From NCBI RefSeq assembly GCF_000002075.1, contig NW_004797935.1:286929-350928 (forward strand): DNA of 64,000 nt, written 5' to 3'. Below are positions 20,129 through 64,000 of this stretch, piece after piece (within the stretch, counting starts at the first letter, position 1; each line of letters begins with the position of its first letter). A program made the position numbers and the translations under genes. This DNA comes from Aplysia californica. Its lineage: Eukaryota. The notes beneath the pieces were generated by a model. It saw only the letters and a list, made by a program, of their open reading frames with translations, searched no databases and was not told where the DNA came from.

Positions 20129-20355
20129 CCACCGATTTTGGGGAGGGGGTTCGGGTCTACATGTGGGTGGGGGAGAGAGGAAGTGAAAGCTGCCTTTTTT
20201 TTCTTTTTTTTTTTTTTTTTCTTTTTTTTTCGTAATGTATGTGTGACAGGAAAGAGATGGGAGAATTGTGTGGATGGAAGAGAAAGTGAAAGGAGTGAAA
20301 ATGCATGAGAAGAAGACGGACGGAAAGAGAGATGATGAATTAAGCGCCTTTTCTT

Positions 20356-21767: not shown

Positions 21768-24700
21768 TCATGATTTACGCTGTGTCAGCTCCACTTCTTT
21801 GCCGTCATAATTTCTGTTTGATGGAAAGAAAAAGCAAACAAGATTCTTGTCAAACAGGTTTCTAAAATAAAATTAATACTTTTTTGTCATGTGAAACATG
21901 TCGCAGACTAATTCTTTTTTCTTTAACTGCTGTGGGATCATTGTCTCTGTATTGATTAAATATTTCTCCAGTTTAAAACACACAAGTGGAGCTCTTAGTA
22001 GGCACTTTTGTAAAAACATTTTTTAAAATGTTTTAAATCAAATTGATTACATTAAAAGCCTTTGTGACTTTATGAATTTCCCATTTCTGAAATAACAAAA
22101 TTGGAGACATCAAAATCAACAAAGTGTTGCTGAATCAAATTCAGTTTCTCTTTCTTGGTGTATACCTCTGTGATACTCTGTCTCGTATGCCTTCTTCTAT
22201 CTGTCCAGTGAAAGGAAGACCTTGCTCCTCAAAGACTCGACATATAGACTAGACTTTAGACCCTATAACTCAACTTGTGTCTTGTGTACGACGCAAGGAA
22301 ACAGCAAAAACACACAGTCACATACATAGTACATTGTAGATAGCTGCCAACTTTTCAAAACTAAAAAACAGACAACCCACATGGCACATCAAGATGGTGG
22401 AGTGGGTGGTTGGTGGGTGCTCTGGTGTGGTTTGCTTCTTCTTTCCTATACATCTATCGTCCTTACCTCCCCTGCTTTTTTTAATGTTTGTTACTCACTT
22501 GTAACACCTCCAATCTTCTGGCGCTCATATGACCTTATGCAGTTGCAAGCGCCGTAAAACCTCTACTAAAACTAAAACTAAAACTAAAACTGAACAAGAC
22601 AGTGGGCATTGGCCAAGTAACCACCTTCTCAACCCCTTCATACAATTTCCTGCATTTAGTAAATTCAATATTACTAACAAATTTACAGAGGGAGATCAAA
22701 GCAAAAAAAAGCTGCTTGTACACACAACAACCTACCGATAATCCCATTCACTGATGCCCCATCCTCGGATTCCATTGACAGTGTAGTTACAGAATCTTTC
22801 AAATATTCTTGCGTCCCAGTCCTCACCCATGTAGAAAATGGGACACTGGATCACTTCACAGGTTAAGTCGTACTTTTGACCACCTGCAGAGAAAATGAAT
22901 ATCTTGTATCAGGACAGGGATGATATAGTTTGTCAATTGGCAACACAAACACATCTGTAGATTTATATAATCCCTTCTAAAATGGAGATAAGTGGGTGCT
23001 CTGGTGTGGTTTACTCCTTCTTTCCCATCAAACACCCATCGTCCTGATCTCTCCTACTTTTTTTTCTGTGTTTGTTACTCTCTCGTAACACCTCTAATCT
23101 TCAGCACTTATATGACCTTATTGTGTTGCAAATGCCGTAAAACTCCATTAAACTAAAACTTGAAGATAACTTCAGATAAAGACAGGTATCGCTACAGTAC
23201 TGTATACTTTCGAGAGGTTGCTGAAATAATAAAATAAAAAACGTCACAGATTTTCTTTTCTTTCAGTCTACCGCTGTTTCTGGATTAAGTTTAAGTAGAT
23301 TCCATGGTATCTTTATCAAAGCTATGGCAAGCATTCTTCTTCTAGTTCTACCGGAAAAGAAAAACAAACAAAGTTCAGCTCTACGTGGATTTGTCTGCAC
23401 GCCGGATAAAAAGTAAAGTGGCTGGGGGGGCAGTGAGCACGTACCAGCAGTGAATTTCAAAGATAACTTTTCAGGAGGCTGCCCGTCTTCTCCCCAGTTG
23501 TAGAACTCAAAATCTGTCTCAGACACGGCATCCATGGAGCCGTCAGGATGGAAGAAGTAGCCAACAACCAGCCTGGAGATACAAAAAAAAAACGCGGGAG
23601 AAATCACATTGTAAAGTGGGCTAAGGGAAAATTGCCTACTTATTCAGTGACTCACTGTTGTTATTTGCAAGACATTTACTCTAATTCTGAAGGACTTAGA
23701 GATGTTTTTGTTGATGTTATCTTTCTCATTCACAGTATAAACTTACTTACACTAGTTACACTACACTTTTTAGCATTGTGGATCAGGCAGGGTAAAAGAT
23801 AAACTTAAAATTAAAGGAGACATTTTTAATGTTGTTTGAAAATTCTTTTTTGAAAAATCAGTTTTGGAGCAATAGGCCCTACATAAATTTATATATAGCA
23901 GTTTTAAAGAATATAAGAGCAAATCCCTCGCTAACTCCCTAATCGTCTCAAGCGTAAATTGATTTCTCTTTCACACCTGCAAAACGAAAGAGCCATACAT
24001 TATACAGTAGTCTCCGCCTAAACGCACGGTGTTCGGGAGGGCCCCTAAGCGTGTGTTTATACGGACATGCGTTTATATGAACCTGTGCAAAGACAGACTC
24101 AATGTAACGATATCCACCATAAAATGTCGGGAACAGATAGCCCAAGAGGAAACTGTTTGTGATAGTCATAGAGACGACGGGCCAGCCACGTGGCTTTCCA
24201 AGTGAACATGCCCAACCGTAAATTCATGGACGACATCAGAATCATAGATCTCTACATTTCTCTTGTGATTCAATGAACAAGTAGCATGTTATAAGTTTTT
24301 CAAGCACAGCTGAGGTTACTTGACTAATCTTTAATCCTATAGAGACCTACCTAGTGTTTTACAGCATTCACGTGTGTTGTGCGTCATAGGCCTAGGTCTA
24401 ACTAAACATTACAAGCAGTCACCCAAACACCAGTCAGAAACCTTCTCACAAAAATGCATTTCCAGTGACCAATCAAAAAACTTTTCAGTCCCCCAACAAT
24501 TCACCGACCAGTCCTAGACCTAGATCTATGTGTCTGTGGAAAGTTGGTGTGAAAACGCTGCCCATCACTCTCTTTGTTTGGCGTGAGGGGCAGTCTCACC
24601 AAATAGGCCCTATCCGGTTTTCTAGGCTTGTCTTAAGCAAGCTATGCAGGCTGCAGCGAAAATTTCCCCTTGTCAAGCTTTACCTGCCAGCGTGTTTCGA

Positions 24701-27700
24701 GGATTGAAGCGTGTGTTTAGAGAGAGTAATCGTGCGTTTGTACGTCTAAATTATATAGTAAAAAGAAACTTCATATGACAAAAGCGTGCATTTGAGTGGA
24801 GCGTGCTTTTGAGTGGCGTGCGTTTAGGCAGGGAATACAGTACAAAAATGATTAAAGGTATATCAAGAAACATAGATTTCTGTCTTATTTGTCAGGTAAG
24901 TGAAAGGAGGAAAATAGGAAATTGGCAACAACACTCTTATCAAACAGAAATTGCAAGCAACTCGGATTGTAGTAATTGTGTACTGGTAAACAGAAGTCTT
25001 GGTAAAAGAGAAATAGGGCCTACATACTGTAAAAGAGTTTTCAAAGACTCCTTTGTGAAAGAAATAAAAATTCAAGGGTTTGTTGCGGAGTACCGTACAA
25101 TTTTTTAAGGCCAGCAAAATTTAGTCAGTTCGAATAACTATTTCATTGAAATTGGCCCGACTGGCTAAAGAAACAAACACATATGATCTGAGGAAATCAA
25201 ATTATGAAGAAGAAAATTGGCCTCAACTCATAGATATCTTCCTGACTTTACCTGGACAAAGACATAGGCATGCAGATCGCTCCTACACACAAGGCACTGC
25301 CATCTTCTAAGTGCGCATAGTTCAAGGCATAACGGTGGAAATATTTCCAGTCTCGGATATTTCCTGCAATATAAAATACAAATGGTTTCTGCTATAAGTT
25401 AGCTTGCTTAAGTACAAAATATCAACAAAATGCATCAAGATAAGCTTGATTTAACAATGCCTCGTTTTAAAGCCACACACAAGTTAGGACAAACTCAGCC
25501 TGAATTATATCTATTTACCCCCGCGGTTTTATTTTTAAAAATTCTGAAGTTATGCAAACTGAGCCCAAAAATGTGAAATTATGCGAATCTGTTGATTTTA
25601 ACAAAGAATGATAAAGGAAAATAATCAGAAATGAAGCAAAAAATGATCAAATTTTGCTAAATTATGCGGGGTGTATAAAACCACAGGGGCAGATCCATAA
25701 GAAATACAACAACAACTGAAACTACAAAGAAAAAACCAATGTGCTATTGCTATATCATATCTATTGCAGAAAAAAAAAAACATTTCTCGTTTCTTTTTCA
25801 TTTTCATCTGCAAAAGATCCCCCCACACTGTTTATTTTTCTTCTTCTCCTTCTCCTCTAACCTCAAGATGTTTCCCAAATCCCCCAAAAATACATGGTAC
25901 AACACTACTATACACCAAAAACACACGCTATGAATGACTTCATCTCTAAGGATAAGAACACTCTACAAATGAGTCCATCTCTACTAAAGATACAGCAGTG
26001 GCAATAAGGGCAGCTCAACGAGGCCATTCTGAAAAACAACAACAATCAGTGGCAAAGCGTCCACACAGTGGAAACCATAAATAACAGGCTCGGTAATAAC
26101 AGGGATTTTTAAAATCCCCGTTTTTTCCTATTCTTTGTCTCTTTTAAAAGTTATCGGCAACAACAGGGCCTCATTGGAGCCCAATCGGTTATAACAGGGA
26201 CAAAGGCTCGTTAACAATGTGTAAAGAGTAAGAGGGGGGAGAGAGAGAGAGAGTAACGCAGTGATGGAGCAAGCACACGTAGCGGGTGAAGCGAGAGAGG
26301 GCTGCGGCGTGCTGCATACTTCAATCTAGCCCTAAGCCTAGCTACACACACTTGTGATAGCCATGCACAGGCCTGCCACATTGCCAAAACCCCTGTTTGT
26401 GGGTACTTGTGGGAAGGGAAAGTGCCCATGGATAAATAAAGCTGGACAAGTGAACAAATGCCTACTTTCCTTACATTTCTGATTTAACAGGGATCTGATA
26501 TAACAGGACTTTTTCTCTGGTCCCACCATCCCTGTTATATCAGGTTTCCACTGTAATCAAATAATCACGGATTCCCTTCCTAATTTTGAAACATTGTTGC
26601 AGTCAAATTCACCCATGAACGTAAACCTCATAAATTAAATGTAAAAAGACGTTCATTATCTCCAATGAACAGTATACCTAACATTCAAAACGGTTTCATT
26701 GCCACAGAATAGCCTGTTCAGCCCTTTCAAGCCACTTTATAAGCAGTCACAAGCTTTGATTAAGTAAGCTTAAAGTGAGGCTGGAAGAGTCTACAAAAAG
26801 AGTTGAAGGGAACCTCCTGTGCACAGCACTCAAAACTGTTTCATTGCCACATATACCCTGTTCACCCCTTTCAGGCCACAGTCAGAAGCAGTCACATTCA
26901 CAAGCACTGATTATGTAAGCTAACTGTTACACTGGTCAAGTCTACCTCACAAATGTGAAGGGTACTAACTCCTAATATAATCTCTTGACAGCTGCGAGTG
27001 CTGTTTTTTTTCCCTCGACTTTTTACCGTCCTATAATCAGAACGTGACCTCAATTATGACACCGGCTCCTGGCTGCGTAAAGCTAGACCAAAACAGCCAA
27101 GTGTGAAATAAAAAATTGATAATTGTCACATTCTACCAAAGAGTTTAGACTCACTGGTATTACATGTAGATTAGTACTGGCACTAGTGACACCTCTGCTT
27201 CTTTGCTTTGTGTTAGGGTATTCACATCTAAAGTTAAATTTAATGTTAGTTCCAATAAATGTTTAATGAGATACTTTCCCGATTATTTTGGTGGTTGAAC
27301 ATACAATATGAATTCAGAATTTGTTTTGAATCACAACTCAGTGTTGCTGCCTCAAGTAAGATTCTTGTGTGATATCTCCAGGTTCTATCTGGTCCCGTCT
27401 CACTTTGATTACCCTGTCAAACAAGTCAGACTTTGCCCCAGACAACAAAGCTAATTTAGCTTCTAACGATGCACCTACTTTGCCCCAGAAATGTCTCACC
27501 CACCGTAGGAATGGTCTCTGACTCCCTGCACTCTGATTCTCTGGTCGGGGTGGCCATCAATATGCAAAATGCCAGAAACCTCTCCAAACTGTTCGTAGTG
27601 AGTCTGATGTGCCCTGGGACAGTTCAATAAGTAATTGTTGCTCTTCACACCATAAGCATAATAATAACAATAATAATAATAACAATAATAGTAATAATGT

Positions 27701-30700
27701 TGATCATTTGTATAGTGCCTTCTCCCATGTGCACACAGCTCTAGATGGTTTGCATAAATCAAAGTACAAAGAGCAATAACAACTGGGACGTTATGATTAT
27801 TGAATCAATGAATGTTACTCTCCAACAGTGGAACTGGTAGAAAAAGTTCGACTCTTTCTTTTTATTTTGTTCTAAAACATTTGCTGAGGTCAGTCTGTGG
27901 GCTCTCAATAAAAATCAGTTGGTCAGCGTGCACTATAAATGATACATGAAGTCAAGTGAGCTAACTCTTTTAGCTTTCTCTCATTTACCGAAACCGGAAT
28001 AGTTTTGTCTTGGCCTACCAAAAAATGTTCCAGAGACCAGTTAAGTTAACCTGAGTTAAATGGTTAAAGCATGACACCATCATATGTATCCTCAGAGCCA
28101 AATGAGAAAACTGAAGAATTATGAGTTTGATAAACACAAGAATATTGTTTTTAAAAAGTACCTTACTCCTCATAAACATAGATCTAGGCATAGAGTAAAG
28201 CCTGTATTCAAGCTACAAGAGACAGTGGCTGAATAGGATAGACTTGCAGCAAGTTCTTCAAAAATAGAACAACACATTTATGAAGCTGGAGCCCACTTTC
28301 AAAACTGAGCTCACAGACGACAAAAAAGCATAACAACCGCCCACGCCTGTCAAAAAAACAGACAGAAAGATCCGTGTCCAACACATTCATCACATCCAAG
28401 CACGGTCTAGATACACATCACAGTAATTTATTAGTAAAAAGACGATATTCAACTCCATGTTGTAGAACTGCATAAGATTCTCTAGCACTTGTCCTTTCTA
28501 CAAAAGTCAACACAGAATAGCTTCTGCTTGAGGTGACCTTAGTACATGTAAGAAACAGTGGGGCACCCATCCCTTCCTCGGTACATGTAAGAAACTGAGG
28601 GGTACCCATCCCTTCCTCGATAACACTGTACTCATACTATCACGGCAACATTGCTTCCCATGCAAGGCGGGATCAAAGTCTTTTTGCACATAGAAAAAGA
28701 CAAAGAGCTGCTGTTTCTGTAATTAATTAAACAACAAAAAAACCCAACAACAACAAAAAAAAACCAAGACATAAACAAGAGGTGCATTACTCAACTGTAT
28801 AATTTTTGTCACCTTTTCAGTGTGTCGAAGTATTCTCTTGACCATGTCTCTCTGGCAATACCATCAGCCATTACATGTGGGTGCAAATCTGTATCAAAGT
28901 CAAAACATTTGGTGTAGGCTTTCCATATCAAGTTGAAATCCACCTTCACTGATTTCCCTGTCTCCGCAATTCTGAAAATTTAAGAACATAATAATAATAA
29001 TAATTGCATATATAATATAGTGCATATCCATGCTCAAGAGCATGCTCTATGCGCTTTACAACTATTATTGCCCCAGCAGACCCTCTGAGAACACTCAGAA
29101 ACATTCTCGGCTTTCGCGGAAGGATACAGTGCAAGCTGCGGATTTCACACGCTCAAACATTATCAAACTGACGAGATCGTTCACTGTCTATAGTCAGGAA
29201 CCCATTTCCACCTGGGTGAAGAGAGGAAAATTTGAGCAAAGTGCCTTTCCCAAGGACACAGCGTCGGGCCCCTGACGGGATTCGAACCCACGACCTTACG
29301 GTTGCGAGTCCGAGAGCCTAATCACTAGGCCACAGACGCCACATAAGAGTGTCAGTTAAATTGACACCCTATTCTTGGAGAAATTAATTCTACGAGCGAG
29401 TATAAAACCATAAAAAGCATCGTGAAAACAATACAGTAAAGAAGGTTTCTTTTTATAAGTTCTTGGAAACATGCCAAACCACAATTTGAAGGTATTTAAG
29501 TCCCAACAATGTAACTTAAAAAATAGGTCAACCAGTGGGCCACTGATAAAAATCAGGACTCAACATGCACTATAGATAGTATAAAAGCACTGTGGGCTAA
29601 TTATTTTGTTTTTTCTCGTCAATTAAATCAGGAAACTTTTTTTTTTGCTACTTGATTAATTTTTTCAAATCATGGTTATAGCATAACACCATTGAAGTAG
29701 GCCTGATCTGAAAGAAGTTGGTAATCTCTATTCCCGTATTTTACCTCATTGTTCCATCAAATGTGATAGACCAACTTTCCATCGGGCTGATAGGAGTCAA
29801 TGTAAGGCCTCCACCAGAGAAGCCTGATCTACTTGCTGTGTCTTGAAGCCAAGTGTCCGGTAACGTTGGCATCTCCAGCAGTCCTATAGATGGGATCTAT
29901 ATATGAGAGAAGATAAAAGTTTAAGCTTTAAATAAAGTCTCATTTCGTAGATTAATAAACATTTCAAGTTTTACGAGGTTGGGTCTCTCGAGAAAATCCA
30001 CACAGGAATTTATTCAAATTTCTTGCATTGAGTAATTGAGGTTTTTTAAAATACAAACTTTACAAATTATGATCTTCTCATTTCGTAGATATTGCACAAT
30101 GGTATCGATGTGTACACAATTGAAAGAATATGACTTTCGTAATAACATATCATGATCTGTGATGTGTTTTGTGCCCCTCTTTTTTTCCCACAGCTTTTAT
30201 ACGACAGCTGCATGCAGAATTAGCTTCCTCTTCACTAAGGATGCACTGCTCTACAATACAGCAGGCTACTGAGGAAACCAGTCAGATATATTCGACCCAC
30301 TGACCCAAATTTTTATTCTATCAAATATGTTAACCCTAACAGTTTTGTGTTCTTTATGTGACAGCATATTGTTCTTCTGTGATGATTTTGAGAGGTGCTG
30401 GCTGTATCTCTCACCCTCCATTCTGAAGTCTCAACAATGTTAGATTTTCCACCAACAGAATTGGTTGGCTCAATACCAACAACTCTGACACCGCCTTGAT
30501 TTGCCAAAATACACAGAGTTAGTATACAAGTACAGTAACCTGAAAAAGAATAAAGATATTAATTTTTTCCTCCAGCTTTTCCCCCTCTATTATTCTGAGA
30601 GTGCGCCAAACTAATCAAATGACAGCAAAAAGCATTTACAGGACTTACACGAAGATATAAAACTGTTTGCACAAAATTGTCCTGTCTTCTGGCAGTGGCT

Positions 30701-32027
30701 GTCACCATGAACACTCCTTCAGAGTTACCTCCATTGATGTAGACTGCATCCACTGCCTGGAAGAATACAAAAACAGAAGATAATTATCACAAGCTGAGTA
30801 AGAGTGAAATCAAACTGACATGAAGCTCCCCCTTTTTAAAGATTCATAAAAGTAACAGATTACATTTAAGGAATGCTTATATTGAAATATGCTGTAACAT
30901 TCAGTAAAATTGGGCATATTAAATTCATGCCACAACAGATTTCAACATAGGCGTATATTATCATACCTCAGCAACTGTTTTAGCATTTCCCAGACTAGCA
31001 ACAATAATGCTGAAAATAAAAATATATTGAACTTGAGACCTGCTTTTGCATGGCTTATATTTCAATGGAAAAAAAGTTTGAAGAATAGTTCTGCAGTGGA
31101 AATCTGGTTCTTTGGGGGAATTTTTTTGCTTCAGTAAGAAAGNNNNNNNNNNNNNNNNNNNNNNNNNNNNNNNNNNNNNNNNNNNNNNNNNNNNNNNNNN
31201 NNNNNNNNNNNNNNNNNNNNNNNNNNNNNNNNNNNNNNNNNNNNNNNNNNNNNNNNNNNNNNNNNNNNNNNNNNNNNNNNNNNNNNNNNNNNNNNNNNNN
31301 NNNNNNNNNNNNNNNNNNNNNNNNNNNNNNNNNNNNNNNNNNNNNNNNNNNNNNNNNNNNNNNNNNNNNNNNNNNNNNNNNNNNNNNNNNNNNNNNNNNN
31401 NNNNNNNNNNNNNNNNNNNNNNNNNNNNNNCAGGGGTTGGGAGAGAGATACAGAAGCAAGGTGGGGGGGGGGGGGTAAGAATAGGAAACTTATGTGGCTG
31501 TAATGTAATTGGAAAGGGGTCAGGAGCAATTTAAGGTTGCCTGGATGAAAAAATTCACTCCACTTGGGTCAGAGCAGTGTACATACACATGGCTGAAAGT
31601 CTTTTTCTGTGTTTCAGAACGCAACTCCTCACACTCACAGTTCAAGATGTGTACATGCTTTGCAAGTTTCTCTACCAACCTCAATACTCCATGTTGTACA
31701 AACAGTTCCATACTACTACTATACCTTTGGCATGTCTTGGGGAAGTTCCTGCAGTTTGTCCATTTCCTCTGGGGAGTTTCGAGATTTCACTCCGTACCCA
31801 GCATCTGAAGAAGATGCCTGCTGTCTGCGCAGACGGAGTTGATTTTGACATATCTTACGGGTCCACAGTACAAGTCTAAAAATCCAGTACTTGATCGGGT
31901 AATGGAAACTGGGCTGTGTATATATTCGTGGAACCTTCACTGTCGTTAACTTGTGGGGCAACCACTGAGCCAGAAGCCAGAATAAAATACTTGTGGAAAC
32001 TGCGCTGAAAACAAGGAAGAGCGTCAT
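21768..32027 (-). CDS. uncharacterised ~421-aa protein with N-terminal hydrophobic anchor; resembles the N-terminal region of invertebrate 'PEP synthase-like' proteins
   Basis: Exons: 32027-31725, 30756-30649, 29896-29745, 28971-28813, 27613-27504, 25363-25252, 23572-23445, 22883-22736, 21813-21768; all GT-AG, 1266 nt open. Motifs DAVYING, FDFDTD, ARETWSREYF, HYEQFG, GVRDHSYGNIRDW..HRY, VNGIRGWGISEW.YR. Gene structure is strong; family assignment is from recall; last exon is least certain. Confidence 0.82.
24005..24840. mobile_element. Tc1/mariner-type non-autonomous element
   Basis: TA|CAGTAGTCTCCGCCTAAACGCACG ... CGTGCGTTTAGGCAGGGAATACAG|TA. Confidence 0.75.
25515..25692. mobile_element. 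~180-bp MITE family (4 copies)
   Basis: Consensus CTGTCCCC..TTTTATGCA ... TGCATAAAAC..GGGGACAG with shared AAATTATGC motifs; further copies at ~36270-36450, ~44227-44405, ~45927-46103. Confidence 0.85.
26066..26553. mobile_element. pogo/Tigger-like MITE
   Basis: CAGTGGAAACC.. ATAACAGG ... CCTGTTAT.. GGTTTCCACTG|TA; left flank is CA (probably a mutated TA). Confidence 0.75.
26683..26965. repeat. diverged ~146-bp tandem duplication
   Basis: TCAAAAC.GTTTCATTGCCACA..CCTGTTCA.CCCTTTCA.GCCAC..AAGCAGTCACA occurs twice. Confidence 0.8.
28542..28619. repeat. 39-bp tandem duplication
   Basis: GTACATGTAAGAAAC.G.GGGG.ACCCATCCCTTCCTCG x2. Confidence 0.85.
28988..29342 (-). mobile_element. tRNA-derived SINE with CORE-like centre, family A
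   Basis: Minus strand: A-box TGGCCTAGTG, B-box GGTTCGAATCC, GTGTCCTTGGGAAAGGCACTT..CACCCAGGTGGAAATGGG, (TTA)n tail. Homologs at 42838-43187 (-), 56781-57126 (+) and a 3' fragment ~21280-21415. Confidence 0.88.
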
Positions 32028-33201
32028 GTTGCTAGCCGAACTCTGACCCTAGGAAGATATGGACAAAGGACACGAACTCTGGTATAAAATTATACAATTT
32101 ATCAGTTATGCCCCTTCGGGTCGCAGCCACACCCCCGTTGCCTGCCTCTCGCTGTCTTGTATACCTTGACGACTACCAGTCAGCACCAACAGACAAACGT
32201 TAGATTTGTACATGTATATATAGAATCTATGCATTTGTATTCGCATATACTCCTTGATAGAAATCAGAATACAAGTACTTTATATTGGGTTCTTGTACTG
32301 CCTTGCTTCTATGAGCATCTGTTAGGAATTAAACGTCGGCACGATTTGCAGAGTCGTGTACGTAGCCTACTGTAGACTGTAGATCTATGGCATGGCATTT
32401 CATCTACGGTTAGATCCAGAGATCTAGGCCTAATTGTCCTTCGACGAACAAAAATGGTAAATTAAAATACAAGTATTAAATACATTGCGCAAAAAAACCC
32501 AACCACAACTGCAGTTACGTATGATATCTCCAGAAGGCACTCCAAAGGGTATACCGATATATTTTCAGAGGCGTATCCACGATACATTTGAAAGGGGTCA
32601 AGTGAAAAACAGGCAAAGCCGTACCGTCACATTAACCCAATAACAACCAACGTAGCCTGTTTTTCACTTTTTATTACGGACTTGGCTTGTTCTTTTAATT
32701 CGATTTGCTTTCATGAAAATACAAGTAGTCAACGACTTAGGTGTTCTGGGTGTTTGTTTGTTTATTTGTTTGTTTTTTGTTGTTGTTGTTGTTTGTGTTT
32801 TTTGGCGGGGGCGGGGGTTTGTTTGTTTTTGTTACTTGTTTTTTGTTTTGTTTTTTTACTTGACTGACATGCAGTACTTTAATTGACTTTTTCACTCATG
32901 AGTACCTTATGACTTTTTTACTGGAATTCCTTCATCTTTGTGACAAAGAAATCCCACATTCAATAGGACATCTAAAACTGTTATTCGGGACACAATTGAA
33001 TGACTTATTTTCGTTTGTAGTCTGGAAATTTAAACCAAATCTACATAACTGAATTCACCGTTGTAATTATTTTTCTGTAGGCTTACACGTGGTATGAATG
33101 AAAGGCGATTAAATTTTGTATATTCTAATCTAAGTAGTCTATGATACGAATAAATAAGTAATGGCCAGTATTCCCTTGACAATAGAATAAACATTTAGTG
33201 A

Positions 33202-38211: not shown

Positions 38212-41200
38212 TTATCCCCTCACATACTTTGGCTTTGGCGTGGTGGGGCTGTAGGGCTGGAAGAGGTGCAACATCACAGCCTAGGAAAACAGAAAAAGTT
38301 TATTTTTTTCAAGTTTAGTAAAAGGGTTTTTCTTTTTTTTTTAAGTAAAAGTTTTACGGCACTTGCAACACAATAAAGTCGTATGAGTGCCGAAGAATAG
38401 AGATGTTACAAGAGAGTAACATACACAAAAAAGGAGGAGAGATAAGGACGATAGATGTCTGATAGGAAAGAAGGAGCAAACCACACCAGAGCAACCGCCA
38501 ATCACCCACTTAGTTAGAGTTTTATGGCACTTGGAACAAAAATAGGTTATATAAATGCGGAAGATTAGAGGTGCTGCTACAGATTAACATACAAAGGAAA
38601 GAAGGAGGAGAGATTATAATGATAGATGTTTGGTAGGAAACAAGGAGCAAACCACACCAGAGCACCTGCCAACCACCCATACAGAAAATCTATTTTTTTT
38701 TAAAGGGAGAACACAAAGTTTAGTGAAAAACTTACACATTGGTCCGGACTAAAGAAAAACAAAAAAAAAACACAATATATATATATATTTTAGCAGCAGT
38801 TCTGGGTAGTAATAGATAGTTCTAAAATAAGCAAACAAACAAGAACTTACCTTCTCTCTAAAAAGTGGAATCATGTTGTCATGGTTAAAAAAACACACAC
38901 AAAAACTGAAGGCAGCTACAAGTACAAGCACCCAGAAAATTACATACATACTTACACACATGCAATGACTAGTGGAGGGGAAAGGGGGGGGGGATGTGGG
39001 AGGGGGCAGGGANNNNNNNNNNNNNNNNNNNNNNNNNNNNNNNNNNNNNNNNNNNNNNNNNNNNNNNNNNNNNNNNNNNNNNNNNNNNNNNNNNNNNNNN
39101 NNNNNNNNNNNNNNNNNNNNNNNNNNNNNNNNNNNNNNNNNNNNNNNNNNNNNNNNNNNNNNNNNNNNNNNNNNNNNNNNNNNNNNNNNNNNNNNNNNNN
39201 NNNNNNNNNNNNNNNNNNNNNNNNNNNNNNNNNNNNNNNNNNNNNNNNNNNNNNNNNNNNNNATTGTGATCCACAGCCTGTTCTCGGCGGCCCTCCAAAC
39301 CAATGACTCCTGGCCGTAGTAAATGTCGTCCGTGACTTCGTGGGGCCGGCGTGGCAGACTGTGCAGGAACACCCACTCTCCACCCGCTTCCTTCATCATC
39401 TGATGAAAATGGAAAACATAAAATTTTATAGCTGCCAACTATTCAAAAACAAAAAGAAAAAAACCATACTCTACCCCCAAAGCGGGTTAAAATGGTGGGC
39501 ATAGGCCAACTAACCCGCATCCAAACTCAAAAAATTTTTCTGCATTTAATAAATTCAAGCTATTCAAAGTAGACCTGCTACAAAAGATCTCTCCAAGTGA
39601 CTTACGGGCTTTGTTCTCATCATTATTGGCAAATCCATCTTGAAAGTTTGTAATTTTTCTACAGTATTAGACCATTAAGAGTAATACTAGAAAAACAGAG
39701 AATACATATTTTTTTACACCAAAAAAAACAGATTTTCGTATTAGACTCTTACAAAGTCTATAAATATATTAACTTCACAACTGGAGAATGGAAGCACAGT
39801 TTTTCATGTTTTGTTGTAAATCAGATTCCCAGCAATCTACTATTGAAATTTGAATGTTCAAAACTTTAAAACATTTTAAACTCTCCATGGCATTTCCATT
39901 AATTTTACTGACTTCCCCAATTAATTATCAGTTACTAAATACAATGCAGCATAAAAAACAAACAGTTGATAGGGAATAACCCCCCCCCCACACACACACA
40001 CACACAAAAACAACAACAACAACAACAATTTTAAAAACAAGATGTTCCGTCCAACCTTTCTATTCACTCCAAATCCAGCAAAATCTTTAATTCTTTTCTT
40101 GATGTTTTCATCGTCTGCTCCTGGTTTTGTCCACGAGTCTGCGATGATGGCATCAGCCCGGTACACAGCTTGCAACGGATCATTACCGATGAGGAAAGAC
40201 GCCCCAGTCTACAACAAAAGACCAGACAACATTTGTTTTACTTCTTTCAGCAGGAAAAAAAAGTTAAATCTCTTGCCAAGCAAAGCTTGAGAATTAAAAC
40301 AAAAGAGCATAAATAAAAAATAATCAATGGATTGTTCTTGCCACTTACTCGCTTATACAATCTCAAAGAGCAGTGTGAATTAGCTGAACAAGCAACAGGG
40401 GACATAACAATGGATCAGCAGAACATGGTAACAGGGGACATAACAATGGATCAGCAGAACAGGGTAACAGGGGACATAACAGTGTGGATCAGCAGAACAG
40501 GGTAACAGGGGACATAACAGCGTGAATCAGCAGAAAAGGGTAACAGGGGACATAACAGTGTGGATCAGCAGAACAGGGTAACAGGGGACATAACAGAATA
40601 TCTAAATACCAGTTGTTGTTTGGTGTGGGTTTTTTTTTGGGGGGGGGGGGGGTGGTAAGTGTTTTACGGCGCTCGCAACTGCATAAGGTCATATGAGTGA
40701 GCGGGACACACCTAACATTTTCAGATGGTAGGAAATTAAAAATTTTGCCCGGGTGACGGCCAAAGAGTCAGGAGCCCAGAGGAGGGAGCAAAGGAGGTGG
40801 GGGGGAGGGGGGGGGCAGAAAGTGGAGACAACAGCAGACGACAGAATATTGCTAGATTGCTGGAAAGGAGGTGAAAGGAGACAATTTTAGAGAAAAAATT
40901 GTTCCGTCGCTACCTGTATTCGAGTCCGGGACCTTTGAATAAGAGGCGAACACCTTAACCTCTAGGTCACAAGAGCCCCCATACCAGTTTTAACATCAGG
41001 AGAACAGAGTTCTGTTTAACTGACATCTATAAGCAGGCACACAGATTATGAGACAGTCTGAATTCATGATATCTGCTTGTACTAATTTGTGCTGTATAAA
41101 TGTATTGCACAAACTGTGCACTCCTTTTCCAAAATGTTTATTTGATTTGACTAGAATGAAAAAAGGTAGTGAAAATAATTACCAGTCTTCATTCAGAATA

Positions 41201-44200
41201 TTGAATTGAGTAAACAATATTTCAAAACATATTTTCTGACGCCTTAAGGGCAATCATGGTAAGCTTTTTGTGAATTTAAGTGTAAAATAAGATGTACTTA
41301 AACATACTTCTGGGATTTTTAAAACTCTTTATTCACCACTGGATATGACATGAACCTAACATCTGCAGATAAATTTCATTCAACATCATTTCTAGCCCGT
41401 GGCTGTAGAACTAACACTGCACGTACCTGCCCTGAGATCTTCATAGCGTCCAGCATAACATCTGTGTCTGGCTCATAGCCCTGAAGAGGAAGCAACCGTC
41501 AAACCCAACAGTATTTGAAACAGTTAAAAATATTCTTCTGAAGCAAAATGGGTAAAAATAAATCTTTGTTCAAACAAGGCTAAATGTATTTCATCAAAGA
41601 TTAGAATGGTCCACAAGTAGAAGTATGTAATTACGATGAAATTTTCAAAGACAGCAACAAAGCCATAGAAAACAACCACATCTCAATAACAGGGTAACAT
41701 TCTTTTGACATCACGGAAAGAAAACTAAAAATTTGAAGAAAGAAAAAAAAGGTGTCAAAAGACAATTTCAACACATTATATAAACCCTAGGCATGCTAGT
41801 TAGTTATATTATAACTGGCTAGCATGCTTAGGGTTTATCAAACAAAGAGACAGAGAGAGTTCATGCCCACTTACACACTGTTTGGGCATGCTTGGGTGAG
41901 CAAGTTGTGCATTATTGAATGTGTATCATAGTACATGAAAGTAAGTAGTGTATTTCTGTGTTGATGCTGAATCTTTGTATGTTGATATTCCTTGAATATA
42001 TCCATTCAAAATTTCCTCTCTGGGTCCATAAAGTTTATTTTACCTCATCGTATCTTATTTTATCTTATCTTAACTTACCTTACCTTATCGTATCTTACCT
42101 GATCTAACCTTATAAGCTGTTTGATTCCCCTAAACAGTGTCAGACTCACCACTGGTGTGGCTGTATTGAGGTCAATGCCTAACCTAGCACAGCCGTACAA
42201 CAGAGAGTTGAGGACGCTGTTTCCGTCTCCGATCCAGGCAATCTTGAGGCCTCGCAAATAGCCAAAGTATTCCTGTACGAAAATAAGCACACAATACCCA
42301 TACGATAAGGAAACTGAATTGTGCAACAGTTAAGTATATGGACAACTGTGTAAATCACTGAATACACAACAGCATCAAGTAGAACAGTCAGGATACATAT
42401 GCTCATTTATTGATAACAAAAGAGGTGGAAAGAGGAAAAAGGACAGGNNNNNNNNNNNNNNNNNNNNNNNNNNNNNNNNNNNNNNNNNNNNNNNNNNNNN
42501 NNNNNNNNNNNNNNNNNNNNNNNNNNNNNNNNNNNNNNNNNNNNNNNNNNNNNNNNNNNNNNNNNNNNNNNNNNNNNNNNNNNNNNNNNNNNNNNNNNNN
42601 NNNNNNNNNNNNNNNNNNNNNNNNNGAGCTTGGGGTGTGGGTGTGTGTGTGTGTCTGTGTATGCAAAGGGGGGGGGGGGATGATGAACTATTATATCCTA
42701 CTTCTGAATTTACTAAATGTAGGTGTATGCACAATATTCAGGTAATCAGCACTGCCTTGGCCTTTTACGGGACGTTCACACCCTAGCCCTACAAGATACC
42801 AGGTGAGCTATCAGCGCCAAGTACCATAATAAAATCAGTAATAATAGATCGCATTTGTATAGCGCAAATCCCCGCTCAACAGCAAGCTCTAAGCGCTTCA
42901 CAATCTATACTATTACCCCAGCAGACCTGAGAGCATTCTGAAACAAACTCAACTTCCTGGGAAGCATACAGTACAAGCAGCCATTTATAGGCGCTTAAAC
43001 ACTAACATACTGACAAGATCTTTCGCCGTCTATGGCTTGGTACCCATTCCCACCTGGGAGAAGTGAAGACAGTTCGTGTAAAGGGCCTTCCCCAAGGACA
43101 CAACGTCGGGCCCGCAGCTTGAACCCCTGAACCCGCAACCTCACAATTACAAGTCCGGTAGCCTAACCACTAGGCCACCGACGCCACAGTAATAAGAATC
43201 TATTAAGCTGCAGCTTTTCTAAAATTTGTGACCGAGTTATAAGATTGTTTGAGATTAGTGGGGTTCTATCGGGGCTTTGTGAATGTTTCAAGCTTAGGTT
43301 TGTCGCAGTTTCTATCTGCAAACCACACATGGTGATCCAAGTCTCATTCTGAAATGAATATTCCGCTCTGAGAAAAATACACATTAACACACACACAAAA
43401 TTCTATCTGTTTTTGCTTTTAAAACTCACCATCTTAGATGTAAAACATCTCAAATGTACCTAAAATGTAGACAGAACCCTTTAATCTCATACATCAATAT
43501 TGTACTGTCAAGCAGGTGCATTGGGAAAGCTACTTTGTCTGCTAGTTTCTTTTTCTTTCTACAAATCCTCCTTTCTGAAAACAGTTTTTTCTTTGTACCT
43601 CTCATTGCTACTCTGCAGAGCGTGAAGTAAACAAGAATTTTTTTCAGCTTTCCTTTGCTATAAACTGGCTCATACCAAAGTGAAGTTGAAAATGCAATAT
43701 AGAATAGGCCCTACAAGGAAAAAAAAGTTGGACAAAAACTTTAACTTTAAGAAAAAATACGAGAAAAAAATACTACTCATCCCTCAATACTTTTAAATAA
43801 ACAAGGACAGGAAAATCTAAGTATTTAAGAGTAAAATGCAAGTATATAAGAAGCTGCAAATCTGAATACTCTCCATTTAATTATAAAGGGAGATATCGTA
43901 TCAGCATCAGCAGATGCACATAGTTCATATATAAGTAAAAACAGAGGAATAGCAACAAACACAACATGTTAGAGATTCTCTCATTTTTACCTGCAGCGTG
44001 ACAAAATAGGCCAAGACCTGCAGAGGCTGAAGCAGGTCAGACATTCCAGTGACCACAGGCACCGTTGACTCATTGGCAACTTCTTCCAGAACTTCCTGTT
44101 TTCCCGCACCGACGATGATGAGATCAGCAGCCCCGGCCAGCAACCTGGACAATCATACACACACATGTTTGTTCATTATTTACAACAAAAAAAATTTGTT

Positions 44201-47200
44201 AATGTGGGTGTTTTTACGCCCCTATTTGTCCCCGCGTTTTTTTGCAAAAAAAAATCTGAAACTATACAAACTGAGCAGAAAAAATGTGAAATTATGCGAT
44301 TCTGTTAATTTTAACAAAGAAAGATAAAGGAAAATCATCAGAAATTATGCAAAAAGTGATCAGATTTTGCTAAACTATGCGGAGTGCATAAAACCCCGGG
44401 AACAGCCCTATCAATACAATGTAGATCATATAGGAGGCAGACTCTGACCCTGCCTGTCAGAGCCAACCTAGGCTGAGAGGGAAACAACACCCTGGCAGAA
44501 ATACTGAGACACTTGACGAAATTCTCCCCACTCAGGAACCAAACGTGGGTCTCCTGTATGCTTGAACGAAGTGCCTAACCCCTACACCACAGTTGCCGGT
44601 TGATATAGACTTGTTTAAGAGAAAGTAAGAGGAGGGGAAAATTAGGCAGGGCAAGGGCACGGGAAAATCCCCCCCCCCCCCCCTTTATTTATGAGATGTG
44701 CTATGACACAATTGAATTTTCATTCAATGTTAAAATAAAGGGTCAAAACAATTATTTTTGTGAACAGGAAATATGTAAAAGGTAAATATTGATATAATAA
44801 TATATAAAGACATTCTAATTCCTTAAACTATTAAAAGGCTTGTAACCTCGACGATGAGTCAGAAAAATCAGACATAATGTAAAACACATTAACTGATTAT
44901 AATCTAAATATGCTTAGACATACATTGATCAATACTGAAAACAAAATATGAACTCTTTTTTTTCACAAACATAAACAAAGTATATCAGCCATAGAGACAA
45001 TACCTCCTTATTCAGTGCAGTGTATTCTGATTCAGAGCTTCTTTCTGCTTCTTCCTTTTCAGTCACAAAATTCAGAGCAATAGCCAGCAAAAATTTCAAG
45101 TAGAAAAAGATAAATAAACAGGGTGGAACATCACCATTCTACACTAACTTACCTTGCAGAATCTTTCCAGTTTTCCTTCCCATCAAGGTGAAGGTCACTG
45201 GCGTTGAAGTAAGCCGCCTGGCCACCAAGTCTCGCCAGACCTGAGCCACAAAAATTATCTCATTCACAATACTGAGCTTGTTTCCTTACTATACAGAAAA
45301 CTGAACTCAACTTTATTATTTCTTTTCCTTAATCTGAAAAGGCTCCAAAAGAAGCTCTCAGTTCAAAACAAAATTTTTAAAATTTGTGGATGAGAAGCAG
45401 TGACATGAGGAATCAATGCTTGACTACTGACTCTATGAAGTTGGAAATGTATGAAACAATTTCATTTTCATACAGGATTTTTTTTAAAATCAAAAGGGTA
45501 TATCAGCACCAAGATTGCTCCCAACATTGCATCATTTGACACAGCTTCTGCTCTTTCTAAATATTGGTAGCCAACAGGTAGACCCCACACAACTATTTCT
45601 TTTATTTAAAAAAAAAAAAAAACGAAGAGGAAAAAACTGACCAATCTGATATTCTTCAAAACAATTCAAATACTTTTAAAAAACCCAAGGGTATATTTAC
45701 CAATGTATACTCGAGCCTCGTTTCGGACACGGATTTTTTTCACACACACACACACACGCAAAAAATCCAGACAATAGAACAGCAATATTCACCTAGCTCA
45801 GCATTAAGCCGAGAAGCTGTATCATCCTTTTCAAAAACTAGCGCTGCAGTTTTGCCAGTTAGTGGCTGAAGCACCTAAGAACAAAAAAATACAGATAGTT
45901 TGAGCAGTATGAAAATCATCATTAAGCTGTCCCCGTCATTTTATGCAAGAAAAATTCTGAGATTATGCAAACTGAGCCCAAAAATGTAAAAATATCGATT
46001 CTGTTAATTTTAACAAAGATTGATAAAGGAAAATAATCAGAAATTATGCAAAAAATGATCAAATTTTGCTAAATTATGCAGGGTGCTTAAAACACAGGGA
46101 CAGATTAAGATTTCTTTTCACCACGGCCATAAAAGATTTCTTTTCACCATGACCATAAAATGCACTAAGTTTACGTACGACAGCCCACCTTCCCCACCCC
46201 CCCAGAAATAAGTGAATAAGTGTGGTAGTGAGCTCAAATAGAGAAAGGTAGACGCTGATATGAAATAAAAGATGTTGTTGTTATCGGTCAAGAAGAAATA
46301 AAAGAAATAAAAGATAAATGAAGGGCACCATATTGTTGCTAAAGTGTTCACATAAGAAAAGGATTCAAGAGCATACAAGAAGATATCACGGAATCAAGTG
46401 TATCTACAAAGCAAAAAAATATGTTTATACCTCTCCATTATCTTTTATTCTGGTTTTCAGATCCTTTGCTGTCCACAAAAACTGATGAATCTCATCTTTT
46501 CCGAAATGCTTCAGGCTGAGAAAGTCACGGCCCACCAGGAATCTGAACAGACAGACCAATTTGATAAATTTACGAGTCAACCTCACAAAGTTAGCTTTAA
46601 AAAATTGCACCAACGTGAATTTTAGACAATCAGGTTTTTTTCTTTTAATTCTAGCTTAAATACAATATACAGTGGGAACTTTTTACTATTCTCCATGTTG
46701 AGAAAATAATCAGATACAAAATATTAAAACTTCTTTTAAACTTTTAAAACTTCTCAGCTGGGGGTGCTATGCTCTTTAAGAAAAACAAAATGTTTTTTTT
46801 CCCACAGATTATTCAGTCCTCTTAATTAGACCTGTGCCCATTCGATTTCATTATTTGACATTCATGATTTTTTAACTATTCACAGCTATTCGAAGCGTGG
46901 CAGAGCCAATCGAATGCTGTGTGATTTTTTTCCGCAATGAATTTCTTCTAATTTTTCTCAACCCGTAGTAAAATTAAAGCATAATCAAATATCTAAATAC
47001 ACTGCTGTAAATTCGACGTTATGTTCTGATTGATGATTACGGGACAGAGCGATAAGAGGAGCCAGTAGGAGTTATAAAATGTGCCTCTAAAAAGCACTCA
47101 TGATGCACTCAATAGACTGTCACTTCAAAGTGCAGCCGGAGATTTTGTATACATTGCATAGCCTACTGAGCTCCTTTTGCACAATTCGATATTCGAAGTA

Positions 47201-50200
47201 CAAGACGATATGGGTACCCACCACCGCTTTGAAGCGCAGTGGCCATATGGGTACCCACCACCGCTTCGAAGCAAAGCGAATGTTTTTTTTGTACGTTGGC
47301 ATACTGAGCTCTCATTGGACAATGTGACATTCAAAGCATGGGTACCCACTCCACCACCGCTTCGAAGCGCAGTGAATGTTTTTTTTGTATGCAGGCATAC
47401 TTAGCTCCCCTTGCAGGATTCAAAGATTCAAAGCATAAGGCTATATGGGTACCCACCACCGCTTCAAAGCCAGAGGCCATATGGGTACCCACCGCCGCTT
47501 CAAAGCGCAGCGAATGTTGTGTTTATTTTTTTTTTATTGTAGGTTGACAGACTTACTTAGCTCCCCTTGACATTCGAAGCACAAGGTTATGAATGTTGTG
47601 ACGTGATGTCATTGCACCGCGGGGTGTCGTGCGGGATTAGAGCCAGTCGTGTTTTGATAGAACACAAAACAAAAACAAAAAAAGAACACCAAAAAATCAG
47701 CCAACCACCATAGCCTACTTGTGGGGAGATCCACAACATTTCTACAGTTTTTGGGTGGGCCTTGGCGCTGTGGGGGGATGGCACGCGGGGACTAACGAAA
47801 TGAGAGATAAGAGTATTATAAGCCGAGCGCGCAAGGCTAAAAATACACGTCACACACCTTGCTGTTACACTCACATGGCCTTTTGTCTCAATCTTTATTC
47901 CATTGTCTGTGCTCTCTCTTACTTTATGGCTGCACAGTAGATTGTTGGGAGTACATTCTGTTCCCTTGCTTTTGTCCATTTTAGGCCAGTTCTTTGATCG
48001 TTGCACTGATGTGTAATTTTAGAGATTGCATTGTCCTTCAGATTGCAAATTTGCATTCTGTTTCTGATTTATTTGTTCAAAATTGTATGTGTAATTTGTA
48101 TAGTTATTATTAGGCCTATTATACTGCCAACAGAATTCTCTTGAACCTTTTTACCCATTTACTGCTAGAAGTCTTAGCTTATATATAAATCTGCGCAGTT
48201 AAATTTAGTGTGATTTGATCAAACTGTACCATGTCAAGCAAACGCACAGAAAGTATTGTTTGGCAGTTTTTCTAGAAGAATAAAGAAATAAAGCTACCAA
48301 TAAAAGAACCTCCCAAAGACAATACAACTTAGCAAACAGCAGTGTTGTGCGACGCAGCGACAGTGTGCATGTGTGTTAGATCAATTGATCTCCGCTCGCT
48401 TGGTAAAAAGTTTTTTCTCTTGTCCAAGTTCCTTTTTTTTTCCTTCCAAGCAGACACTAGGCACGAGTGGTCGCCTGTTTTTATTATTCCCCCTCTCCCT
48501 TCCCCCTCTGCTACAGTCGCTTTTTTTTTATTTATTTTTAAAAAGCAACAAAAAAATTGTTTCATCATCGCACACGTTACGCAAGCCATGGGTGCTATAC
48601 GAAAAGAGGCAGACACACACAGAGCTGAGAATCACTGGATGAATAGTGCTGTGATTGTGAATAGTGAATATTCAATAAAGAATGCTGCTGATAGACTCAC
48701 GGCATTAGGCCTCACCTTAGGCCTACATGTACAAGTATAAAAAAAGCTATTCGCAAACGATATTCGAATAGCACAAATAGTGACATCGGGCTTCGAAGCT
48801 TCGATGATTTTTTAAAAACTCAAAATCGCACAGCATTACTCTTAAGAGTGCCTCTTAAATAGCCTTTATGTCTTAAATTGTGCAGACCGATAGCATAACA
48901 ATCTCCGAGACAGATTAAGAGGCCTGTTAATGAGGGGACATGATTTTTTCAGGTTGGGGGGTAGGGGGGTTGGAGAGGGGGAAGCAAATGTATAACAAAT
49001 AGCAACAGCAAAAGAATGTTTTTCAACATAAAATGCTCAAACTGGTTACAGCATAAAATTTTACAAAAAATGAATTGTGAAAATATCAGAATAATCTGAC
49101 TGAAAGGCAAACAATAAAAAAAAGGAGGAAACTTCAATATGCCTCAACTTAGTACCTCTTTGGCTTTGTTTTTTCTTCACCAGAGTCAGGAGTCAATTCG
49201 ATCTTGCTAGTCTTAGGTCTCAGAATGGAAGTCAGTGATTCCTTTTTCAGCATAGCCTTCTTCGCAAAATCCGGTGAGAATTTCCCACGCATGATGCTAA
49301 AACTGGATGTGTATAGGCATGAATACACTTAACTTATATTTAGTTTAAATAAAAATTACTATTGCAAGAAATTTAGTTTATAAAAACGGAATAAAGCACT
49401 ATTAAACTTCAATAGTGTTGTCTTTTAGTCGCAATGCATGTTGAGTCTGTACGATCTCATTGAGTCTGTACGATCTCATTTTATCAAGTACATGTATAAA
49501 AAAACAATATTGTCTCTGAAAAGAGGCAGAAGAAGAATCTACCAAAGACCTGTATCTTCTATCTTCTGTAAAAATACTGAAAAGACTGACCGCCAGAGAA
49601 AGACTCGTAGTACGAAACAGTTTTCTATCCTCAGATTCAATCAAAACAAACTGGAAATTTTCAAATCTTCAGATATATATATGCCTTTAGAACTTCTTTG
49701 GAAAGGGAATAACAATTAATTTCTGAGATACGAGTTTGTGTATTTTTAGAATAATTAGCCTTTTCGGCAGAACTGGAAAATTTTATAGGCCTATTTTTTT
49801 TTACTGCGACCATCAACCAGGTGGCACTTAGTCTTGGCAAGTCTAGTTCCAAGACCAGTGCACGCCTGCCTTGGAGAAGAAAGTGCAACTTCTTTATTCA
49901 TAAGGTTCACAAGAGGCAAGGAAAATATATTTCTGCCACAGTTTCAATTAAGTATCCCTAGAGGCTCTGACAGCGATAGAAAATAGAAGTGGATTATAAA
50001 TAGATTCCAATACTGGCATTTCAAAGCTTTTAAATTTATAAGACACGAACAAAACAATAATGAAACTAGATCTAGCTTTGACTGCTTTTGGGACTTTTTG
50101 TTTTTTTAATACGGAGAGCCCATTGCGGAAGGGATTAGATAACTAGTCTGGTCGGATCGATCGTCCGACTCGTCACATGACGAGGAAGCGAGTCGGGTGC

Positions 50201-53200: not shown

Positions 53201-53521
53201 TGGACTCGAGTCCGAATAACGACGGCCTTGTTTATAATGACAAAAATCCACCAAGTTTGAGAGCTTTCACATACTCAGAAAGCACATTTCACGATGTACA
53301 CATTTGAAATACGAATGGCAAATGTTTTGGTCAAGGTATACTCACGCATCAATATTACTGGAACTTGTGGAACTTGACGCCGAATCACTTTGACTTTCTC
53401 GAGCAGGCGGGGGGTCATTTTGGCTTGACTTAGAACTGGCTCTCGCGCTAGTTCTTAGCAGCAGTTTATGTGAACAGGAGGCTGAAGGCGCCTTCAAAAG
53501 AACTCGATGTAAAAAATTCAT
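38212..53521 (-). CDS. OTC: ornithine carbamoyltransferase-like protein, probably mitochondrial, catalytic motifs degenerate (candidate pseudoenzyme), 11 exons, ~429 aa
   Basis: Exons: 53521-53346, 49296-49156, 46542-46431, 45874-45793, 45240-45153, 44144-43991, 42272-42150, 41480-41427, 40208-40056, 39399-~39262 (donor in gap), 38280-38212. Fold motifs GRDFLSL, FEK, LGG, WIGDGN, GYEPD, FLH.LPR..EV, AENR.W, C-terminal YSP..PKPK. Internal exon sizes 82/88/154/123/54 nt equal those recalled for human OTC. The symbol denotes family, not demonstrated activity. Confidence 0.9.
40394..40595. repeat. 36-38-bp minisatellite, ~5.5 copies
   Basis: AACAGGGGACATAACA..TGGATCAGCAGAACAGGGT repeated. Confidence 0.95.
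40657..40980 (-). mobile_element. tRNA-derived SINE, family B (second copy)
   Basis: Head and tail match 33202-33707 in reverse complement. Confidence 0.85.
42838..43187 (-). mobile_element. tRNA-derived SINE, family A
   Basis: Colinear with 28988-29342; A-box TGGCCTAGTGG, GTGTCCTTGGGAAG, AATGGGTACC. Confidence 0.85.
44412..44597 (-). mobile_element. tRNA-derived SINE, family C
   Basis: Reverse complement aligns with 19157-19350. Confidence 0.7.
46827..48838. mobile_element. ~2-kb non-autonomous hAT-like element
   Basis: TAGACCTGTGC ... GCACAGCATTA termini; 8-bp TSD CTCTTAAT/CTCTTAAG; TTCGAA motifs; five internal TGGGTACCCAC..CCGCTT repeats at 47208-47512. Confidence 0.75.
51608..52157. 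mobile_element. element built of ATTCTCACCC/GGGTGAGAAT palindromes
   Basis: About 8 full or half palindromes in two arms around a GC-rich core; TTAGGACACAAC direct repeat at 51612 and 52146. Confidence 0.65.
52278..53222. mobile_element. fold-back element with TATTCGGACTCGAGTCCGAATA palindromes
   Basis: Left arm ~52278-52321 is the reverse complement of ~53110-53152; two more palindrome units to ~53220; CpG-rich core. Confidence 0.75.
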
Positions 53522-60100: not shown

Positions 60101-60194
60101 ACCGTTTCTCCGGGACAAAAAGTGAGGATTATGGGCCCTGATTATGTTCCAAATGCAGTGAAAAAGCGAGACCTGTATGTCAAGAATGTACCCA

Positions 60195-60225
<31 letters not shown>

Positions 60226-63587: not shown

Positions 63588-64000
63588 GTGAGTACTTCTT
63601 AGTTTAGTTTAGTGGGTCAGTACTTTTTATTTTAGTTCAGTAACTTGACCGCCCAGTGATGGCGCACTGGCTCACTGGCGATGCTTATCGCGACCCCAGT
63701 GCTTTCTTGTCGTATCTTCATTTTTTTTACACACTGAAAACAGCTCATAACAATGAATGAGCTTAAGAAGATGTCACATTTTCATAAGAAAGAGTGAGTG
63801 TGTGTGTGTGTGAGGGATGTGGGTTGCTACAGATTACCAATCTCCCACCCCATTTGAAAATCCAGTTAGCAGCAACCTCCGCCTAACAGCAACAAAGGCT
63901 TACTTCTCCAGAGGGTTGCTGTAACTTTAAGGCAGACAGGACACCACTGTAGGTTTACTTATTGGGGCTATGACAATGTATATGCTACACCTAACGACAT

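Follow-up and report, generated by a model that had tools for sequence, protein, structure and literature searches.

The sole ornithine transcarbamylase gene of Aplysia californica, expressed and conserved with a dismantled active site, most likely encodes a mitochondrial pseudoenzyme

The ornithine transcarbamylase (OTC) gene described here lies on the minus strand of a 64-kb window of the Aplysia californica genome (RefSeq GCF_000002075.1, contig NW_004797935.1, positions 286,929-350,928 of the forward strand; all coordinates below are positions in this window). A first-pass annotation of the window had read the gene as an intact OTC fold with a dismantled active site, and this reading is supported: the gene is expressed and under purifying selection, its catalytic residues are lost and its predicted fold is kept, which, judged from sequence, most likely makes the product a mitochondrial pseudoenzyme. 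The gene is the single OTC orthologue of Aplysia and not a paralogue, as it had been labelled. The explanation that we favour, with a modest balance of probability, is that a dead protein has been kept for a non-catalytic mitochondrial job, most likely as a folded trimer that would bind a partner protein or the inner membrane.

Results

Active-site losses

The Aplysia protein was compared with 51 canonical animal OTCs, with residues numbered on the 354-residue mammalian OTC. All motifs quoted in the first-pass annotation were found in their place, and the substitutions it had claimed (at R92, R141, H168, D175, N199, the SMG loop and C303), together with the retention of H117, Q171, D263 and R330, were confirmed. 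The changes relative to the canonical set are S90D, R92A, T93S, R141G, L163M, H168Q, D175Y, N199S, S267K, M268P and C303S, while T91, H117, Q171, D263, L304 and R330 are retained. Its reading of the motifs stood in part only: S/N161T is real, but the reported VTG amounts to that one change (gastropods have ISG or ING) and the leucine at position 170 is ancestral (gastropods have HPLQ).

The changes are distributed over the exons as follows (all on the minus strand). Exon 2 (46431..46542), where the mature protein starts, encodes a well-conserved part of the scaffold. The carbamoyl-phosphate loop in exon 3 (45793..45874) has its phosphate-binding motif, Fx(E/K)xSxRT, broken by S90D, R92A and T93S, with R89D alongside, and the 80s loop in exon 4 (45153..45240) is strongly diverged (G119D) around the retained H117. 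Exon 5 (43991..44144), whose best relatives of solved structure are mammalian OTCs, carries R141G, S/N161T, L163M, H168Q and D175Y; the HPxQ motif is thereby broken (H168Q), with Q171 retained. N199S and H202N are found in exon 6 (42150..42272), exon 7 (41427..41480) matches its orthologues in size, and exon 8 (40056..40208), one codon longer than in the orthologues, has a broken DxxxSMG ornithine loop (S267K, M268P) in which D263 is retained. In exon 9 (39263..39399) the sequence HSLP (C303S) still fits the HxLP motif and R330 is retained; exon 10 (38212..38280) encodes the conserved C-terminal helix, an extension and the stop codon.

SxRT, HPxQ and HxLP are kept by all characterised transcarbamylases (PMC4581275). 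Two of these three defining motifs are broken in Aplysia, and therefore a change of acceptor substrate does not explain the losses, as had already been argued in the first-pass annotation. Of the 15 conserved ligand contacts (residue list taken from PMC6098936), 10 were found to be replaced, compared to 15 of the 80 remaining conserved sites (Fisher P =4e-4); the majority of these 15 non-contact changes flank the active site. Compared block by block with the panpulmonate consensus, the 80s loop, the R141 segment and the SMG loop have an identity of 0.27-0.40 and the surroundings of the phosphate loop one of 0.53-0.60, while almost every other block reaches 0.6-0.87; without the active-site loops, the Aplysia branch is an ordinary one (0.21 versus 0.18 for Physella). 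The protein scored 262.5 bits against TIGR00658 (residues 57-359, with the final few profile positions absent), below the curated cut-off of 280.85, while an intact snail OTC scored 371.3 bits, above it. Of eight exons submitted to Pfam, five matched the two OTCace domains, and the AlphaFold model (monomer only) has a pLDDT of 96 and a TM score of 0.96 to human OTC. From what is known of the conserved motifs, the Aplysia OTC would be catalytically dead.

Gene structure

The interval 38212-46542, to which the gene had been assigned, was found to hold nine exons (46542-38212, minus strand) with AG acceptors, with GT donors at every readable junction and with a single unbroken frame; the earlier description of an open frame, canonical splice sites and OTC-like exon sizes is borne out by this model, while coding exon 1 and an alternative exon fall outside the interval. 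Coding exon 1 (53345..53521, minus strand) contains the start codon and the presequence, is 100% identical to residues 1-59 of P0050 and ends in a phase-2 GT donor. P0050 (XP_005108221.1) is the Aplysia californica protein annotated as an ordinary mitochondrial OTC, and its exons map to the window. The sizes of exons 3-10 are 82/88/154/123/54/153/137+gap/69 in Aplysia and 82/88/154/123/54/150/138/69 in the intact orthologues of Elysia, Lymnaea and Bulinus, with identical phases.

One assembly gap (42448-42625) lies entirely within intron 5 and affects no exon. A second (39013-39262) hides the final base and the donor of exon 9, making this junction unreadable in the assembly; the frame of exon 9 nevertheless fits, because 137 bases can be read in Aplysia and the orthologous exon, which has phase 0, is 138 nucleotides long in Elysia, Lymnaea and Bulinus. 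This gap was left unfilled and the affected residue masked as X. The spliced model was searched exon by exon, and P0050, cut before or masked at the gap residue, was used for whole-protein steps.

The presequence is basic, acid-free and serine-rich (6 R/K and 0 D/E within the first 32 amino acids); it appears to be of mitochondrial type and suggests mitochondrial import. The alternative exon (49156..49302, minus strand; 147 nucleotides, in frame), known from the RefSeq isoform X1 record, places a basic stretch of 49 residues after the presequence. Isoform X3 is without the presequence exon, and a non-mitochondrial form may exist.

Copy number, orthology and synteny

The first-pass annotation had proposed a genome search for a second, canonical OTC. 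No second OTC was found when the genome was searched with two Pfam models, TIGR00658 and two intact snail OTCs, which returned only this locus and the aspartate transcarbamylase (ATCase) domain of CAD; an intact second copy should have turned up, because the diverged copy was itself found by the same searches. The gene is likewise the sole Aplysia cluster among the 120 best OTC matches and in a profile search built from dead forms. In the phylogenetic tree the Aplysia OTC falls inside the euthyneuran OTC clade with a support of 99 (100/100 with the active-site loops removed), a support that covers the euthyneuran grouping rather than a position within Euthyneura, and it is approximately 63% identical to the euthyneuran OTCs of Elysia, Lymnaea, Bulinus and Bradybaena. 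Downstream lies a conserved multi-exon gene of DUF7064 type (approximately 23431..32105 from its matched exons, minus strand), which matches a Bulinus gene and its Lymnaea counterpart; the intact OTCs of Lymnaea and Bulinus have this same gene downstream of them, orientated as in Aplysia. Because of the shared neighbour and the placement in the tree, the gene is the positional orthologue of these OTCs.

Two OTC copies are held by the land slugs and snails Arion, Bradybaena and Candidula. The second Arion copy (P0069; Arion vulgaris, UniRef A0A0B7AMI9) is independently part-degenerate (R141E, D196S, N198S, M268V, C303S, P305S) and has an intact copy alongside, making it a true candidate for the dead-paralogue model. 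Solemya is the only named bivalve among the 120 best OTC matches, with no oyster, mussel or scallop; OTC may have been lost or have diverged in these, or may have been missed by the word-based search.

Urea-cycle genes

Matches to carbamoyl-phosphate synthetase, obtained with three models, all fell in one locus which runs into dihydroorotase and ATCase exons and is thus CAD; no mitochondrial CPS1/III was found with these models in the gapped Aplysia assembly. Because CAD alone was found, the carbamoyl-phosphate supply looks to have been lost too. A published homologue set lists CPS1 for Biomphalaria, Pomacea and Octopus, not for Aplysia (PMC7860981 supplement). NAGS was not found in a genome search that was without a good positive control, while ASS, ASL and an arginase-family gene are present. 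Judged from gene content, mitochondrial citrulline synthesis looks lost and the cytosolic steps from citrulline to arginine kept. Both the apparent loss of CPS1/III and the occurrence of the dead form in other lineages had been missed by the first-pass annotation.

Transcription and selection

RNA comparison covered exons 2-5. Two contigs derived from RNA, each from a different study, were spliced across these exons with zero mismatches and extend far enough on either side to accommodate exon 1 and exons 6-10; the substitutions, whose absence from transcripts would have spoken against the pseudoenzyme reading, are thus present in spliced RNA over these exons. Sequencing or assembly error was ruled out for exons 2-5 by the two RNA contigs and one DNA run. 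A run labelled as another organism (X7) contains the spliced transcript with zero mismatches and is probably mislabelled Aplysia material rather than a second species. Shares of 0.11-0.15 across many RNA runs were not taken as expression, intronic repeats giving a like signal.

In the DNA of a second individual, exons 2-5 showed 2 synonymous and 0 non-synonymous differences (weak, P =0.08). In a branch model the Aplysia tip has a ratio of non-synonymous to synonymous change (dN/dS, omega) of 0.047, a bound that is like the background, and omega=1 was rejected (P =5e-4). The Aplysia protein is 56% identical to P0010, a dead relative described below, with a dN of 0.35 and randomised four-fold sites (28/88 identical), and omega=1 was strongly rejected for this pair also. 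The path between Aplysia and P0010 post-dates the losses that they share, and dN/dS on it is far below 1, which indicates that selection persisted after the active site was lost. A decaying copy, with dN/dS near 1 and no transcripts, had been named as the outcome that would count against the pseudoenzyme reading; instead, dN/dS is far below 1 and spliced transcripts exist.

Dead relatives

P0010 is a full-length transcript from marine plankton samples (ERR1719239, JGI 3300018897), which we take to be Tara Oceans samples, and is dead like the Aplysia OTC. P0002 is an anonymous genomic exon carrying the same diagnostic losses. P0010 is sister to the Aplysia OTC with a support of 100 (91/92 with the active-site loops removed), and the two have in common 14 residues found in at most one canonical OTC. 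V130L, L139I, R141G, S/N161T and D175Y are common to Aplysia, P0010 and P0002 and occur in none of the canonical OTCs. A long-branch artefact is disfavoured as the source of the Aplysia and P0010 grouping, though not fully excluded, given the support of 91/92 without loops and the 14 shared derived residues, compared to 1-2 for the dead Arion copy.

Both mobile loops carry deletions in P0010, including that of the loop bearing H117, and D196, N198, H302 and part of the SMG loop are additionally lost. K88, Q171, D263 and R330 are retained in both full-length dead forms, and S90D is common to both. The simplest reading of a planktonic sister of Aplysia is a pteropod, and P0010 is probably from one. 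Pteropods form the sister group of sea hares, with a minimum of 133 million years set by fossils (PMC7568333); if P0010 is a pteropod sequence, the dead form would have persisted for more than 130 million years. No further dead relatives were found in two metagenome-contig scans, the profile search built from the dead forms recovered nothing beyond the two full-length members already known (Aplysia and P0010), and the ESM Atlas gave bacterial OTC clusters only.

Neighbouring features

A divergent eEF2-like gene (55781-63600, plus strand) stands head to head with OTC exon 1, and a short tandem repeat (56400-56610) immediately precedes one of its exons; in Elysia crispata the head-to-head neighbour of OTC is, unlike in Aplysia, an AMP-binding gene. 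Exons at 12500-20200 (plus strand) belong to a large acidic protein that we take to resemble the ribosome-biogenesis factor UTP14.

Discussion

A non-catalytic role of some kind, as scaffold or as sensor, is probable for the Aplysia OTC. Its lineage would have lost the mitochondrial carbamoyl-phosphate supply (CPS1/III and probably NAGS), after which the constraint on the catalytic loops would have lapsed; acidic residues would then have taken the place of phosphate-binding ones, where they may stabilise the empty pocket, and purifying selection would hold the scaffold for a second role. In this scheme we infer mitochondrial import, the trimeric state, the sequence in which the events took place and what the second role is. 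A scaffold is favoured over a sensor or a new catalytic site because P0010 dispenses with the mobile loops and the ornithine site has eroded differently in the two forms, and the role is accordingly favoured to lie in the folded body, the presequence and the C-terminal extension. In mammals, OTC is attached to the inner membrane and forms clusters with other enzymes (PMC8517447, PMC7860981).

Several observations weigh against a dead scaffold. The known partners of OTC, CPS1 and NAGS, are the products of genes that are seemingly lost; the assembly being gapped, however, CPS1, NAGS or a second OTC may have escaped detection. One polyA run of unlabelled tissue gave zero reads on the exons, which indicates low or restricted expression. 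The losses in P0010 fall on ligand contacts no more often than on other conserved sites (6/15 versus 35/81, P =0.69), and because they spread beyond these contacts constraint in P0010 appears to be generally relaxed. Synonymous change is saturated, so that the omega values, computed with a custom codon-model script, are bounds, and the AlphaFold alignment consisted mostly of canonical OTCs and would yield an OTC fold regardless.

It is also conceivable, though unlikely, that the dead enzyme is a small-molecule sensor of ornithine, arginine, citrulline or another amine which controls a partner, for instance arginase; its acidic phosphate loop would then mimic bound phosphate and hold a binding-ready conformation. 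Control of arginase by OTC in yeast ('epiarginase') is a precedent, and ASS, ASL and the arginase-family gene remain in the Aplysia genome. The metabolite sensor suggested in the first-pass annotation gains from the residues kept by both dead forms (K88, Q171, D263 and R330, with S90D in common), but is weakened by erosion of the ornithine site, N199, S267, M268 and L163 being replaced in Aplysia and D196, N198, H302 and part of the SMG loop also missing from P0010; the retained residues may, moreover, be structural.

Rather improbable is a neofunctionalised enzyme performing another chemistry without carbamoyl phosphate. That S90D, R141G, D175Y and S/N161T recur in two or three lineages and in none of the 51 canonical OTCs suggests selection on new residues, but the two dead forms differ across the pocket and present no common new catalytic set, and all characterised transcarbamylases keep the three motifs named above.

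The first-pass annotation had also considered a paralogue that would join a canonical OTC in mixed trimers and inhibit or regulate it there. We regard this as very unlikely. A canonical partner could have been missed, since the assembly is gapped and the genome search scores best candidates only; Aplysia retains H117, and Arion has duplicate OTCs of which one is part-degenerate. The searches, however, gave this locus and CAD only, although the dead copy, more divergent than an intact one would be, was found easily; the gene occupies the ancestral locus and is the sole Aplysia cluster among the matches listed, and CPS1 is missing. As the sole copy in this assembly, and with the loop that supplies H117 to the adjacent active site deleted in P0010, the dead OTC cannot regulate mixed trimers.

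There is equally little room for weak residual OTC activity, using carbamoyl phosphate from CAD, for example, or running in reverse. The protein is the sole copy, is annotated as OTC, and has an intact fold with D263, R330 and Q171 retained, but other residues stand in place of R92, R141, H168 and N199, human deficiency follows from R141Q or from N199 variants alone (PMC6098936), and the TIGR00658 score lies under a cut-off that the snail orthologue exceeds. Decay towards a pseudogene, without current function, is largely refuted: protein divergence is raised (dN about 0.25 to relatives versus 0.10 among relatives) and one RNA run gave no reads, but the frame is open, the splice pattern is conserved, the protein remains 56% identical to P0010 despite randomised synonymous sites with omega=1 rejected, and the second individual shows only synonymous differences in exons 2-5.

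If the preferred reading of a dead scaffold is extended beyond Aplysia, animal OTC may have an ancient and essential non-catalytic mitochondrial function, which would preserve the gene after loss of the urea cycle, would have come to light separately in insects and in sea hares with their planktonic relatives, and would be at work in vertebrate OTC without having been noticed; we consider this wider claim possible but doubtful.

Loss of OTC is the usual description for animals that have given up citrulline synthesis, whereas Aplysia keeps an expressed and conserved gene from which the active site has been removed. As a clean orthologue, approximately 63% identical to working snail enzymes, it is a natural separation-of-function experiment by which suspected OTC moonlighting becomes directly testable, and the insect parallel suggests that it is not a one-off. 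It is predicted that Aplysia, a standard model of neurobiology in which nitric-oxide signalling occurs, is unable to convert ornithine to arginine and needs arginine from its diet or citrulline recycling (ASS and ASL being present). The RefSeq label of a normal OTC is misleading, and the record has served as OTC in a published conservation set (PMC7860981 supplement).

Comparison with known systems

No report of a dead Aplysia or molluscan OTC was found in a literature search, most subscription journals being outside its reach. The Aplysia protein resembles the euthyneuran mitochondrial OTC (EC 2.1.3.3; PF02729+PF00185; TIGR00658) in exon sizes and phases, neighbouring gene, presequence, C-terminal extension and predicted fold, and differs from it in its broken SxRT, HPxQ, R141, N199 and DxxxSMG, with no CPS1/III found in the genome. 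The other transcarbamylases (ATCase, PTCase, AOTCase, SOTCase and YgeW) have the same fold and show that the second-substrate loop is changeable; they keep all three carbamoyl-phosphate motifs (PMC4581275), while the Aplysia protein keeps HxLP only. The pseudo-dihydroorotase of fungal CAD-like proteins and Pseudomonas PyrC' (PMC4581275) are, like the Aplysia OTC, dead metabolic enzymes kept as structural parts, but they have a different fold and support an active ATCase, whereas the Aplysia OTC is without a known active partner.

The closest parallel is in arthropods, where genes annotated as OTC lack active-site residues and keep the predicted fold in animals without CPS1 (PMC12419136, 2025). 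As in Aplysia, an OTC fold without catalytic residues is found in CPS1-less animals; the arthropod proteins, compared here by their published description, are far more diverged (at best about 27% identical to bovine OTC) and patchy. The Aplysia case is probably independent of the arthropod one and much more recent, because it is nested inside the gastropod OTC clade with clear orthology. A dead OTC in a CPS1-less animal is thus already known in arthropods, and Aplysia adds a probably independent case that is much closer to working enzymes, syntenic and datable.

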